A stretch of 64,000 nt of DNA from Guillardia theta CCMP2712 (lineage: Eukaryota; Protista; Cryptophyta), in the NCBI RefSeq assembly GCF_000315625.1, contig NW_005434666.1, positions 667,877 through 731,876 on the forward strand, in the 5' to 3' direction. The notes below the pieces were generated by a model. The model saw nothing but the letters and a program-made list of their open reading frames with translations. It was not told the DNA's origin and searched no databases. Both the position numbers and the translations under genes were made by a program. Shown here in pieces: positions 10,998 to 21,197 of this stretch (its first letter is position 1; each line of letters starts with the position of its first letter).

Positions 10998-13900
10998 ATG
11001 CTCAAGACCAAGTCAATTGACCTGGACGACAAAGATGTCGAGACAAGAAAGATCGAAGAATTGAAGGAGAAGCTGAAAAAGATCAAAGAAAGAGAGCTGA
11101 AATTGTTCTCTAAGATCCAGAAACAATCACAGCAGAGCTACGAGAGGGTTGGGAACGAGAGCAAGAACTTAGCGCTCAGTGCTCCAACTCGGCCAAGGCC
11201 CTTATCCGCGTCAGGGTCATTGAAATCTCCTTTGCAACGTCAGAGTCTGGGCTCATCCCTCTTTGCGGTCCCTAAGGCAAGGCTTCCTCCCAGCCTGCAA
11301 ATCCTCAATGACTCTGAAACGACTCCCAAGAAATCTCGGTACCCGATGCTTCCTTCTGTGCTTTGCATACTTGACGTTCCGCATTTCTCGCCAGCGACCC
11401 TTGGATCCCGGGAGGAGCTTTGTGGCAATCATCGACGCCAACAATGTCATGGCATCGGGCTCCTGGCAAAGAAGTTGAAAGCTCCAAGAAAGAGAACCTA
11501 CGCCAGTCCATTCCGAAATATTTCCATGAAGTCAAACCAGGTAGTTGTACTTTCTGCCCGCGCGAGGACATCGTTGCTGTCTTTTTCCCCTCTTCCTCCT
11601 TCCTTCTCATTCTTGAGCATCTTCATAGCCATCTGACCGACCGGGTCACTCGTAAACTCTTGCAGCGCCTTGAAACCTTCTTGCCGTCTAATCGTCTACT
11701 TCCTCAGGGCCGGTGGAGTCTGAGGAGATACTGAGGCAGACTGAGAGGTTCGATTCATGGGCCGTCGTGAGCGGCGATGTGAGGATCTTCACGGAGAACG
11801 GAAAGATGCAGCTACAGGGGAAGAGCGCTGTTAGGCATTGCAAGGTCCTCAGCTCCAGTCAGATCGTCAGGTATGACTATTTCAATAGTCCTTCCTTCAG
11901 TGTTTCTGTCTCCCTCTCTGCTCTGCTCTGCTCTGCTCTCCTCTGCGTCTGCTCTGCTCTTCCCCTCCCCCTCCCCCTCCCCCTCCCCTTTTTTATCCTC
12001 CTCTTCCCCCTCCTCCTTACTTCTTCACGTCAATTTTCTTTCAGCGCGATCCCTGATTCCTACTCTCTTCCTTTCTCCTCAGATTTGTCTTCCGAATTCC
12101 GCCGCCTCTGAGCGGCTGCCGAGCGGTCGTGGATTTAACCTCAGGCGATGTCAACTCCAAGTACCACCGAGCCTTCAAACTGTGGATCAGACCCGACGGG
12201 GACATCGGCTTCTCTCTCACGACAGGACGATCCTCCCGCAAGAATGCTGAGAGCAAGGTACCGAGGAGAGGCGGGAGAAGAGGAGCAGGGAGGACGAAGG
12301 AAATACGATAGAAGGAAGGGAGAGGTCGTTGGAAACGTGCAGATGGCAAAGAGGAATTGCAGGGCAAAGGGGAGAGAGAGGTTGAAGAGCTTGTTTGCTT
12401 CTTACACTTGTTTTTCCTCTCAGTTGAGGATCGGATCGGTAAACGCTGATGAATGGTACGTCGGGCAACTTGTGGTGGGAGCAGGAAACGACGCATGTGA
12501 CTACGGCATCGACGTGTGGAAGGTGAGGATGATGTGAAGAAGAGAAGGAAGAAGAAGATGGAAGGAAGTGGACATTGGGGAGCAAGGGAAAGGGGAAGGA
12601 AATAAAGGAGGAGAGGAAATGTAGAGAATGAATGGGGGCAAGAGGAAGAGGGAAGTTTGCAAGGACGGGAAAGTAGGAGGAGGAGGCGAAGGAGAAGGTG
12701 GCGAGACTCAAGTTCAGTTCCACCAACTCGGTCGTTTTGACAACGCTGCTGGCGTCTCAGGTTCCAGGTCAGGCTGGGTCGCACAGGGTCGCTCCGAAGG
12801 TCCAGCAGAGGATGGAAGAGGGGAGGGGAGGTGACGGGAGGGAGTTCAGGTGAACTACAAGATGAAGGGCTGCACGAGGATGTTCTGGTGAGGGGGAGCA
12901 GTGCCGGGGTCGCCGATCTGACACGTTGGAAGGCACCACTGCCGCCTGTCCGACGATGAGATCCACGAGGAGGTAGGTTCTGCCCCGAGCTTCCTCGTTC
13001 CCCTCGTTCCCCTCCCCACGTCTCCTCATCGCTGCCCTCTCTGTCGCCCTGCTCGCTCCCATCCCCTTGCCTCCTCCTCGCTGTGCCCTCCTGCTTTTGA
13101 CTTCCTGGCGAAGGAACCGATGAGGTTCGACCTTTCCTTCAGCCAGAGGATCGGGACCCCCTCCGACGACCTGGTAGCTCACTGCCGCCGCCCTTTTGAC
13201 ACCTGACGGACGTGAGGAAGAGGAAAGTGCGGGAGACCCTCTGCCAGGACATCGCATACTCCATTGCAGGAGCTGTGGATAAGGTCAGTGGTGGTGCGAG
13301 TGATTATGATCAGGAGGAGGAGGGAGGAGCAGGAGCAGGAGCAGGAGCAGGAGCAGGAGCAGGAGCAGGAGCAGGAGCAGGAGCAGGAGCAGGAGCAGGA
13401 GCAGGTCATTGAAGTTGGTTTCTTATCGTGTTGAATGTTCAGATTCGAGTCATTCGCCTCAACTCTGACTGGGACGTTGCACAAGTCATTCTTGAGACAG
13501 GCGTGTTGCCTGGAAAGAGGTTAGCAGCGAGATGATGATGATGATGATGATGATGATGATGATGATGATGATGATAATGATGATGATGATGATGATGATG
13601 ATGATGATGATGATGATGATGATGATGATGATGATGATGATATGATGATGATGATGATGATGATGATGATGATGATGATGATGATGATGATGGTGATGAT
13701 GGTGGTGGTGATGGTGGTGGTGGTGGTGGTGGTGGTGGTTTTGATTCGTTGGTCGCTGACGGAGAGGAGATAACACGTTTGACAGCCCGAGGGAAGTCGC
13801 TATGAATCTCATCGAGCAGCTGAAAGAGAGCAAGTGAGATTGACTGCCTTGATTCGAACGTCTTGTTGTCTTGATAACTTGAATTGACACCTGGTGGATT

Positions 13901-19900: not shown

Positions 19901-21197
19901 CCCTCCCTCCCTCCTCCCTCCCTCCTCCCTTCCCTCCCCTCAGCCTTCTCAGAACGTATTGCCTCATACCCTCCGCAGCGCCTGGCATCCCAAGGAAGAG
20001 ACTCTGTGGCTCAAGAGCAATGCCAACAGCTCGCTGGTTTTCGTGCATGACAAGAAGGGAGAGGAGCAGCGAAGACTCGAGCTGCCGTGCGCAGCTATCT
20101 GCATGACCATCAGCAAGGAGGGAGAGGTCTACTGCGGCAGTGGTTCCGACTTCTTCACCAAGCTCGACCCGAGTTTGAATGTCGTCTGGAAGGTTGTTTC
20201 CTCCCTCTTCTTTTTGGCCTTGCTCTCCTTCCTCCTTCCTCCTTCCTCCTTCTTGCTTCCTCCTTCCTCCTTCCTCCTTCCTCCTTCCTCCTTCCTCCTT
20301 CCTCCTTCCTACTTCCTACTTCCTACTTCCTACTTCCTGCTTCCTGCCTCTGTCTATCTCCTCTGCTTCTGTCTAAATGCCGCCCAGGTCACCTACACCG
20401 ACGGCCCTTGTGCTCGAGGGGTCGCGATCGATGGAGACAACCTCTACGCAGCCTTCAATACTGGCCCGGCAAGCCTCCAGCTGTTCTGCTCCTTCTTTGC
20501 CTCTCGTTCCCTCTATCGCATCTCTTTCCACTCCCTCGTCCTCATACCTCTTTCCTCCTCCTTTTTGACTCCCTTCAGCCTCCTGCATCGCTCCCTTCCT
20601 CCCTTGCAGTTGCTCTCAGCTGCTCTCCTCCCTCTCTTGACTTTGCCAGCAGGTTCTCGTCCTCAACCGAAGCAGCGGCGCCAAGCTGCGCGTCATCCAC
20701 GTGAAGCCCAACTTGAGCATGGCGCTGAGCCTCGTGGTGGTCGCCCCCGGTAGCATGCGGAGGAAATAGGGGAGGCGATGGGCAGAGTCAGGAGGAACAG
20801 GAGGGAAAGGAAGGGGGCTAGGGGGGAGAGAAGGATGGGAAGGGGCTAGGATGAAGCGGAGGAGGAGGAGGAGGAGGAGGAGGAGGAGGAGGAAGAGGAG
20901 GAGGAGGAGGAGGAGGAGGAGGAGGAGGAAGGGAGAAGACGAGGATCTCACGGACGCTCTAGGACTCTTCGCCGTGTCAGACAGCGGGAGGGTTCTGCTC
21001 TACCGGGCTGACGGAAGTTTCTCGCGGGTTGTGAGCAGCGGGTACCTCAACGCAGCCCTCGCCTTCGACGGCAAGAGGATCCTGGTGGGAGGCGCAAACT
21101 CCAAGGTCTCGTTAGCTGGGGTGGAGGTGGAGCTGATTAACAGCAGGTGTGGCACTTGTTCAAGCTGCCGGAGTTCGGAGGGAAGATCATCGCGTGA
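10998..21197 (+). CDS. Large multidomain protein: coiled coil, beta-sandwich, SEA-like module, 2x SAM, degenerate PARP/ART domain with insertions, 4-Cys Zn ribbon, FN3, NHL-like beta-propeller
   Basis: SAM: GVEKVVKFIDTF...EIFRQNEVDGRTLLGLTMSDLEKLGIREEEHR and SGISTLSQLLAVTDQKLLQAGIKALGHRKLLL. PARP fold: EYKEANEFF..VQRV..IERFNSVK..RLLYAG..ICADGF..HGRSLDF..VLLCDVAVG..GYDSVY..DMYSIYNAFQALPRYLITF. FN3: VPDAP..LKWTEP..YVLEC..YCFRVRARNAAGWSAWS. Propeller blades: ARGVAIDGDNLYAAF, LFAVSDSGRVLLYRADGSFSRV. Stop TGA 21195-21197. A scaffold gap interrupts an intron. Confidence 0.75.
13326..13404 (+). repeat. Intronic (GGAGCA)n microsatellite
   Basis: About 13 copies seen directly. Confidence 0.95.
13531..13739 (+). 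repeat. Intronic (GAT)n grading into (GGT)n microsatellite
   Basis: About 200 bp, seen directly. Confidence 0.97.
15854..15953. other. Scaffold gap (100 N)
   Basis: Run of N. Confidence 1.
20230..20345 (+). repeat. Intronic (CTTCCTC/CTTCCTA)n heptamer repeat
   Basis: Seen directly. Confidence 0.9.

Follow-up and report, generated by a model that had tools for sequence, protein, structure and literature searches.

Tankyrases (TNKS/TNKS2, PARP clade 4) carry a SAM domain directly before a PARP-type ADP-ribosyltransferase (ART) fold, and their SAM polymers bring the PARP domains into arrays and have roles independent of catalysis (PMC9712121); descriptions of true tankyrases come from animals (PMC2964712). 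The pseudo-PARPs TASOR, ZAP/PARP13, PARP9, RCD1/SRO and LRRC9 keep an ART fold under selection with the NAD-binding residues replaced, and loss of two or more of these residues marks inactive ZAP, RCD1 and TASOR (bioRxiv 10.1101/2020.03.09.974832). The SAM tandem of Caskin-1/2 oligomerises on a scaffold protein (PMC4994250), and type I glutaminyl cyclases define a five-bladed propeller fold (PMC7948796). Here we describe a gene that resembles each of these in part. It occupies positions 10998-21197 of the forward strand in the window, the whole stretch of 64,000 nucleotides from Guillardia theta CCMP2712 (contig NW_005434666.1) that was analysed, and encodes 1,811 residues that include two SAM domains, a very likely PARP-type fold without its catalytic triad and a predicted propeller, with purifying selection on all domains measured in orthologues. 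Every component fold is known and the function is deduced; we lean, with some reserve, towards a single-copy, cytosolic, SAM-oligomerised, non-catalytic adaptor or scaffold conserved in cryptophytes.

The likeness to tankyrase lies in the SAM directly before the PARP-type ART fold, and polymer scaffolding is likely a shared principle. Unlike tankyrase, this gene has two SAMs, no His-Tyr-Glu (H-Y-E) triad, two inserts in the ART fold and a tail of zinc motif, fibronectin type III (FN3) domain and propeller. Ankyrin repeats gave no Pfam match in the exons or orthologues, and the N-terminus holds a ConA-like sandwich; with neither ankyrins nor triad, tankyrase membership was rejected. With the pseudo-PARPs the gene very likely shares an ART fold under selection, with replaced NAD-binding residues and a likely role of that fold as a non-catalytic interaction module, whereas their partner domains (WWE, macro, CCCH, SPOC, RST, LRR) are unmatched in Pfam scans of it. 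Both Caskin SAMs can be aligned with the tandem; everything beyond the SAMs differs, and at an E value of only 0.001 the oligomer mode is not transferable. The TRIM family (MID1-type FN3-SPRY, TRIM2/3/71-type NHL) also combines a zinc motif, FN3, ConA/SPRY-like sandwiches and a propeller, each of them present in this one chain. The order here is another, the propeller is nearer to five-bladed folds than to NHL, and the sandwiches resemble lectins or GH16 at least as closely as SPRY. RING and B-box gave no Pfam match, the sole four-cysteine motif being C-terminal, and TRIM membership was rejected on their absence. Type I glutaminyl cyclase (PF05096) and YjiK have the five-bladed fold in common with the propeller, which differs in its low identity (12-16%), its lack of a Pfam match and its position as the C-terminal domain of a large protein without signal peptide.

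An earlier note, made from the letters of this DNA, had already compared the gene with tankyrase and its tail with TRIM proteins. The first comparison holds for the order of SAM and PARP and fails for the ankyrins and the triad; the second fails for RING, B-box and the NHL identity of the propeller. The same note recognised the combination in no described family, and this agrees with the literature consulted, in which no described family with this architecture was found, most subscription papers lying outside reach. A term search of two PARP surveys (PMC2964712, PMC4245714) and an update on human domains (PMC10450202) returned no such architecture; the text of both surveys yielded no mention of fibronectin or SPRY, and that of PMC4245714 none of Guillardia. 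For human PARPs the update reports KH and RWD as split domains, and no pseudo-PARP was found described that carries an entire globular domain within its ART fold.

Gene structure

The 30 predicted exons join to 5,436 nucleotides that code for the 1,811 amino acids and a TGA stop (21195-21197), with no internal stop; all exon modules lie in the same orientation and in a single reading frame. The 29 introns were placed by hand. They end in AG throughout and begin with GT except for intron 27 (GC-AG), and their sizes range from 41 to 269 nucleotides apart from intron 20, which measures 505 nucleotides including 100 N. The region is intron-rich and its introns carry purine- or pyrimidine-rich repeats; a repeat lies within intron 23 at 18604-18684. 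Since an acceptor-like AG (10990-10991) precedes the ATG at 10998, the 5' end of the gene and its true start are uncertain, and exon 1 gave no Pfam match. Exon 10 starts at 13221 or at 13248, of which 13221 adds nine residues and gives the better fit to the profile of the mobile module described below.

The gap in intron 20 is flanked by exons 20 and 21, the two halves of the second SAM domain. Orthologues were drawn from ENA, JGI or Logan assemblies; searches were run exon by exon, and orthologues with a single open reading frame (ORF) stood in for the joined protein. In the intron-free ORF of orthologue L009, the exon 20 peptide (4041-4115) and the exon 21 peptide (4125-4307) share one frame. 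Their spacing equals the two residues and the split codon that remain at the end of exon 20, and therefore both sides of the gap belong to one gene with no exon hidden between them; L003 keeps the same register. Two overlapping natural ORFs together span every shared module: P0028 (1,130 residues) holds the exon 2 motif, sandwich 1, SAM-SAM, the PARP N-half and sandwich 2, and P0022 (1,050 residues) runs from the PARP N-half through the propeller to the stop. Exon order is collinear in L009 and L010 (exons 2 to 29/30), L005 (exons 5-29) and L055 (exons 4-29). Comparison with orthologous sequences thus confirms 10998-21197 as one gene from which the gap removes no coding sequence, as the earlier note had proposed when it joined the modules in one orientation and one chain across the gap at 15854 to the TGA at 21197. 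Intron 20 also contains, before the gap, a non-repetitive stretch (15680-15853) that has no match in the orthologues.

Table 1. Features of the gene in window coordinates and the basis of each assignment
Feature	Coordinates	Strand	Basis
Exon 1: charged stretch, probably a coiled coil, with a Ser/Pro-rich linker	10998-11338	+	Sequence; true start uncertain
Short conserved N-terminal motif W-x-P-x-G-A ... S-W-H	11396-11470	+	Seven residues invariant in 5/5 rows
Beta-sandwich 1, main part (exons 3-8)	11708-12972	+	Orthologue matches; homology to sandwich 2
SEA-like mobile module within a loop of sandwich 1 (exons 9-13)	13114-13989	+	Genome-copy profile; absent from orthologues
Beta-sandwich 1, last two strands, within exon 14	14273-14344	+	Matches in L003, L005, L006, L009, L010
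SAM domain 1 (exons 15-18)	14519-15203	+	Pfam SAM_1 on exon 17, E 0.003; orthologue SAM_2
SAM domain 2 (exons 19-21), split by intron 20	15296-16205	+	Pfam in orthologues; Caskin-2 alignment
Assembly gap	15854-15953		Within intron 20 (15636-16140); register of exon 20 and exon 21 matches in L009, L003
PARP-type ART fold, N-half (very likely)	16636-17185	+	Pfam PARP positions 3-80 on exon 22, E 0.017
Beta-sandwich 2, predicted ConA-like	17216-17953	+	Inserted in the PARP fold after the VAVG strand and before GYDSV
PARP fold resumes, GYDSV motif at 18026-18040	18000-18045	+	Conserved in all rows reaching the motif
Second PARP insert: helical/charged, conserved C-x-C-x-x-C at 18281-18298	18056-18385	+	Low model confidence
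PARP fold, last strands, split by intron 23	18390-18730	+	Orthologue Pfam PARP positions 137-198
Four-cysteine probable zinc motif, C-x2-C-x25-C-x2-C	18763-18861	+	The four cysteines are invariant across 9 rows
Fibronectin type III domain (exons 24-25)	18890-19400	+	Profile match to integrin beta-4 FN3, E 3e-5; Pfam fn3 E 2e-4 in P0055
Predicted five-bladed beta-propeller, exon 25 end to exon 30	19715-21197	+	Orthologue model; most conserved part; stop 21195-21197

The PARP-type fold and its inserts

The Pfam PARP matches of the two halves are collinear (positions 3-80 and 137-198) and the order of motifs fits, but each match lies below the cut-off. The C-halves of orthologues match positions 137-198 with E values of 3.4e-5 and 4.5e-4, and alignment by hhalign to the PARP domains of the same genome gives 1.8e-4. 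A PARP-type ART fold is thus very likely present by profile comparison; a PDB sequence search with the N-half gave no lead. All three triad residues are replaced in the G. theta gene, His by Ala (16810-16812), Tyr by Asp (16897-16899) and Glu by Met (18398-18400). Every orthologue that reaches these sites has A, T or S for His, D or E for Tyr, and H, Q or M for Glu. With the H-Y-E residues lost, the fold is likely non-catalytic and would neither bind NAD+ nor transfer from it. The genome holds 24 other PARP matches. An expanded family (L018-L027; G000 C29, C41, C239, C234, C221, C195, C164, C112, C28) consists of long frames of 560-1,175 amino acids ending in a PARP domain, and the translations read retain H, Y and E, unlike the gene at 10998-21197.

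Sandwich 2 forms a 250-residue insert after the VAVG strand. In the structure model of an orthologue (m3168f3c4fd1f) its core reaches a predicted local distance difference test score (pLDDT) of 70-90, and matches to solved chains have Z scores of 11.4-14.7 at 4-17% identity, in agreement with Foldseek: GH16 leads (14.7; root-mean-square deviation (rmsd) 2.8 over 165 residues), followed by a sialidase lectin domain (13.7) and the SPRY chains of CRLF3 (12.2) and MID1 (11.5). The model therefore places sandwich 2 in the ConA-like lectin/glucanase superfamily of curved beta-sandwiches; because SPRY/B30.2, lectin and GH16 chains lie within about 3 Z units at such low identity, the subfamily cannot be named. 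A GH16 activity was rejected, the motif E-x-D-x-E of such catalysis being absent from the sandwich strands. An Atlas search with the insert gave no lead (scores under 0.9; best TM by row 0.56). Sandwich 1 aligns with sandwich 2 over 193 columns (hhalign probability 95.5, E 1.3e-8), so that the two are paralogues, copies of one duplicated globular domain, and sandwich 1 would join the same superfamily by homology. Its last strands in exon 14 are bordered by Glu/Lys-rich low-complexity sequence.

Sandwich 1 is interrupted only in G. theta, by a module about 100 residues long that gave 25 matches in the genome (L082-L106) and none in any orthologue. When 31 exon peptides were scored against a profile built from the copies in the genome, the top four were exons 10-13, and these cover the profile in sequential order; their individual scores are weak (2.9-5.7 bits), and the argument rests on order and ranking. 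Many paralogous modules carry the motif GS-V/I-I/V, which the copy in this gene lacks. The module has no PDB sequence match, Pfam SEA (PF01390) has no match anywhere in the genome or in controls, and two paralogues match Pfam FAZ1_cons weakly (E 0.04-0.09); the SEA-like character is a presumed resemblance and no profile assignment. The module may merit a family definition of its own. As a core part of this gene it was rejected on its absence from orthologues.

SAM tandem, zinc motif, FN3 domain and propeller

Pfam finds two SAM stretches in orthologues, with E values of 1e-13 to 3e-14 (SAM_2, E 3e-14, with two stretches in one), and the best PDB sequence match of the pair is the Caskin-2 tandem, with both SAMs aligned (E 0.001). 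The zinc motif gave no PDB sequence match, and its interpretation as a degenerate B-box obtained no support.

The propeller comprises the last 215 residues and about 20 strands, with many invariant polar residues. Its orthologue model (m9d4cce676e80; blade pLDDT 67-91) best matches five-bladed chains, the glutaminyl cyclases of Xanthomonas (Z 22.8, rmsd 2.7 over 204 residues) and Myxococcus (22.4) and YjiK (19.8). NHL domains score 17.1 or less, about 5 Z units behind, and the NHL repeat PF01436 has no Pfam match in the propeller; on this ranking and the strand count, an NHL (six-bladed) identity was rejected. The GEG glutamate is catalytic in type I glutaminyl cyclase. The propeller rows lack the motifs TQG, GEG and NELE found in the genome's own cyclases, comparison with one of these cyclases by hhalign is not significant (E 0.1), and cyclase activity was rejected on both counts. 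The model thus suggests a type I glutaminyl-cyclase-like five-bladed fold that is not a cyclase. The genome contains at least three type I glutaminyl cyclase genes (PF05096; L044-L051; G000 C113, C3, C74), one with an E value of 2e-55.

The modules named in the earlier note can be judged against these results. SAM-SAM is borne out by the Pfam matches in orthologues and the Caskin-2 alignment, FN3 by the integrin beta-4 and Pfam profiles, and the pseudo-PARP by triad loss in all orthologues reaching the sites, with the fold itself resting on collinear matches below the cut-off. The beta-sandwich in its list is present, and a second, homologous one lies inside the PARP fold; its Zn ribbon stands as an invariant four-cysteine motif, from which zinc binding is probable. 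Two names did not survive: the SEA-like part is a multicopy mobile insert particular to this genome, and the NHL propeller is predicted to be a propeller of the five-bladed cyclase fold.

Distribution, selection and expression

Among 1.84 billion representatives, a search with exon 23 identified six relatives; additional searches contributed long ORFs and fragments of the propeller. The environmental sequences fall into about a dozen types, with propeller identities of 46-91% between types. A channel gene beside P0022 clusters with a protein of Teleaulax amphioxeia (99.8% identity over 400 residues), and P0022 is assigned to that species on this ground; a cryptophyte origin of the remaining types is an assumption. 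The sequences point to a family of about 1,800 residues common to cryptophyte algae. The gene is single-copy in the genome of the window (87,145,349 bases, 669 contigs), and its propeller is not encoded on any viral contig searched. The channel gene encodes a TRPM-like protein of 1,900 amino acids (SLOG, TRPM2-like, ion transport) and lies tail to tail with the orthologue (L008 4273-10809, L010 11214-19618, L055, L056). It neighbours the gene in Teleaulax-like contigs and not in the Antarctic type (L113) or the window; a functional link was rejected, the neighbour being a zf-MYND gene in the Antarctic type and, slightly further on, a Myb gene in the window.

Ratios of nonsynonymous to synonymous substitution rates (dN/dS), taken as domain averages from four orthologue pairs, none with G. 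theta, are 0.05-0.07 in the propeller, 0.09 in the SAMs, 0.05-0.15 in the PARP N-half, 0.05-0.22 over both PARP halves and 0.16-0.33 in sandwich 2, with a maximum anywhere of 0.45. Purifying selection acts on all domains measured and most strongly on the propeller. A hydropathy test revealed no hydrophobic N-terminus or signal and no clear membrane helix, and the protein is therefore probably cytosolic, despite the fact that the closest folds of its domains are mostly secreted.

Exon 23 occurs in four assemblies of 2011, all from one study and of unspecified kind, and next to none of its sequence words occur in 13 assemblies with the same species label that are guessed to derive from RNA. Of the six members in the cluster of the Teleaulax orthologue, none derives from a transcriptome, whereas the cluster of the neighbouring gene does include transcriptome sequence. 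Both hint at low or conditional expression.

Proposed role and alternatives

The polymerising scaffold suggested in the earlier note is still the most probable idea. In this adaptor or scaffold reading, the SAM tandem would self-associate, as the SAMs of Caskin and tankyrase do, and align many copies of the protein. The dead ART fold may serve as a rigid hub whose two loops present sandwich 2 and the cysteine-containing helical insert, and the zinc motif and FN3 domain may form an arm that holds the propeller. The central face of the propeller would bind one fixed, conserved partner, with further protein or glycan contacts added by the two less conserved sandwiches. Such an assembly would gather partners by avidity into a punctum or filament, perhaps in only one condition or life stage. 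Several observations weigh against this proposal. The PARP part of the structure model is poor (pLDDT 30-50), so that the fold assignment rests on weak collinear profile matches; the hydropathy test is crude, and one propeller window reaches 2.06. A conserved Asp occupies the Tyr site, another precedes the Glu site, and R-P-x-C is invariant; together these residues could form a different active site.

It is unlikely that the protein is an inducible innate-immune sensor or restriction factor resembling TRIM proteins, ZAP or TASOR, with SPRY-like sandwiches and a propeller that recognise a conserved product of a virus or transposon, which SAM polymers would cage or relay. The parts do overlap those of TRIM proteins (SPRY chains at Z 11.5-12.2, FN3, propeller), two pseudo-PARPs, ZAP and TASOR, counter viruses and transposons, and the absence of exon 23 from the 13 presumed RNA assemblies and of transcriptome members from the Teleaulax cluster would fit induction. 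Virus-facing PARPs, however, evolve under positive selection (PMC4038475), while this gene is single-copy and no domain has a dN/dS near 1, although averaging over whole domains in pairwise comparisons may conceal a small number of selected sites. An effector is also missing, as there is no RING and the ART is dead. The antiviral defence suggested in the earlier note has accordingly gained no positive evidence.

Marginally less probable is a non-canonical enzyme, in which SAM assembly would switch on another reaction, catalysed either by the propeller with its cyclase fold or by an ART pocket rebuilt from the conserved Asp, R-P-x-C and D-H/Q. The replacement residues are conserved rather than random, and the propeller has its invariant polar residues and enzymes as its nearest folds. 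Such a pocket would nevertheless have a small neutral residue at the His site and a variable one (H, Q, M) at the Glu site, the propeller lacks the glutaminyl-cyclase motifs and significant similarity to one of the genome's cyclases (E 0.1), and the sandwiches lack E-x-D-x-E.

Slightly more doubtful again is a structural role in a cryptophyte-specific part of the cell (flagellar root, periplast or ejectisome) that SAM polymers would build up. The narrow distribution, in a scan that did not extend to prokaryotic genomes, agrees with it, as do slow evolution and the weak match of two mobile-module paralogues to FAZ1_cons, a profile from flagellum attachment zone proteins. The module, however, is absent from orthologues, and a constitutive structural protein would be expected in culture RNA assemblies, where exon 23 is not found. 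A longer shot still is a condition-induced recognition filament of SAM polymers, in which the dead ART would display a lectin/SPRY-like domain beside the former active site and the propeller would read a fixed ligand, for example a peptide N-terminus. Scarcely credible is a reading as two or more adjacent genes or a mis-join at the gap, for which hand placement of the introns and one GC donor could be cited, against the overlapping ORFs with all shared modules, the collinear order in four orthologues and the SAM2 register across the gap.

Other features of the window and genome

Downstream of the gene on the opposite strand lies a Myb-repeat gene (23169-23550, minus strand; Pfam E 5e-13). Upstream, a minus-strand frame (10316-10678) stands head to head with the gene and limits the position of the promoter; its last part is ankyrin-like by eye, with no Pfam match. 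Within positions 2709-5441 (minus strand), one exon resembles the final part of a protein kinase domain, and a frame of 348 residues carries Ser/Pro/Arg-rich tandem repeats, some about 16 and others about 35 residues long. In addition, 13 near-identical matches of one DNA pattern on different contigs (L065-L067, L070, L072, L074-L081) point to a dispersed repeat family.

Significance

The gene extends the short list of pseudo-PARPs by a conserved family whose design, a duplicated globular domain nested inside the ART fold, was not found in the PARP surveys consulted. A recognition filament, if true, would mean that a TRIM- or tankyrase-like assembly was reached independently, with no catalytic effector, for use in infection or the sexual cycle. 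A dimorphic sexual cycle has been described (PMC7486100). Conserved in abundant plankton (Teleaulax) yet apparently absent from culture RNA assemblies, the gene is a candidate marker of a rarely sampled state such as infection, stress or the sexual cycle.

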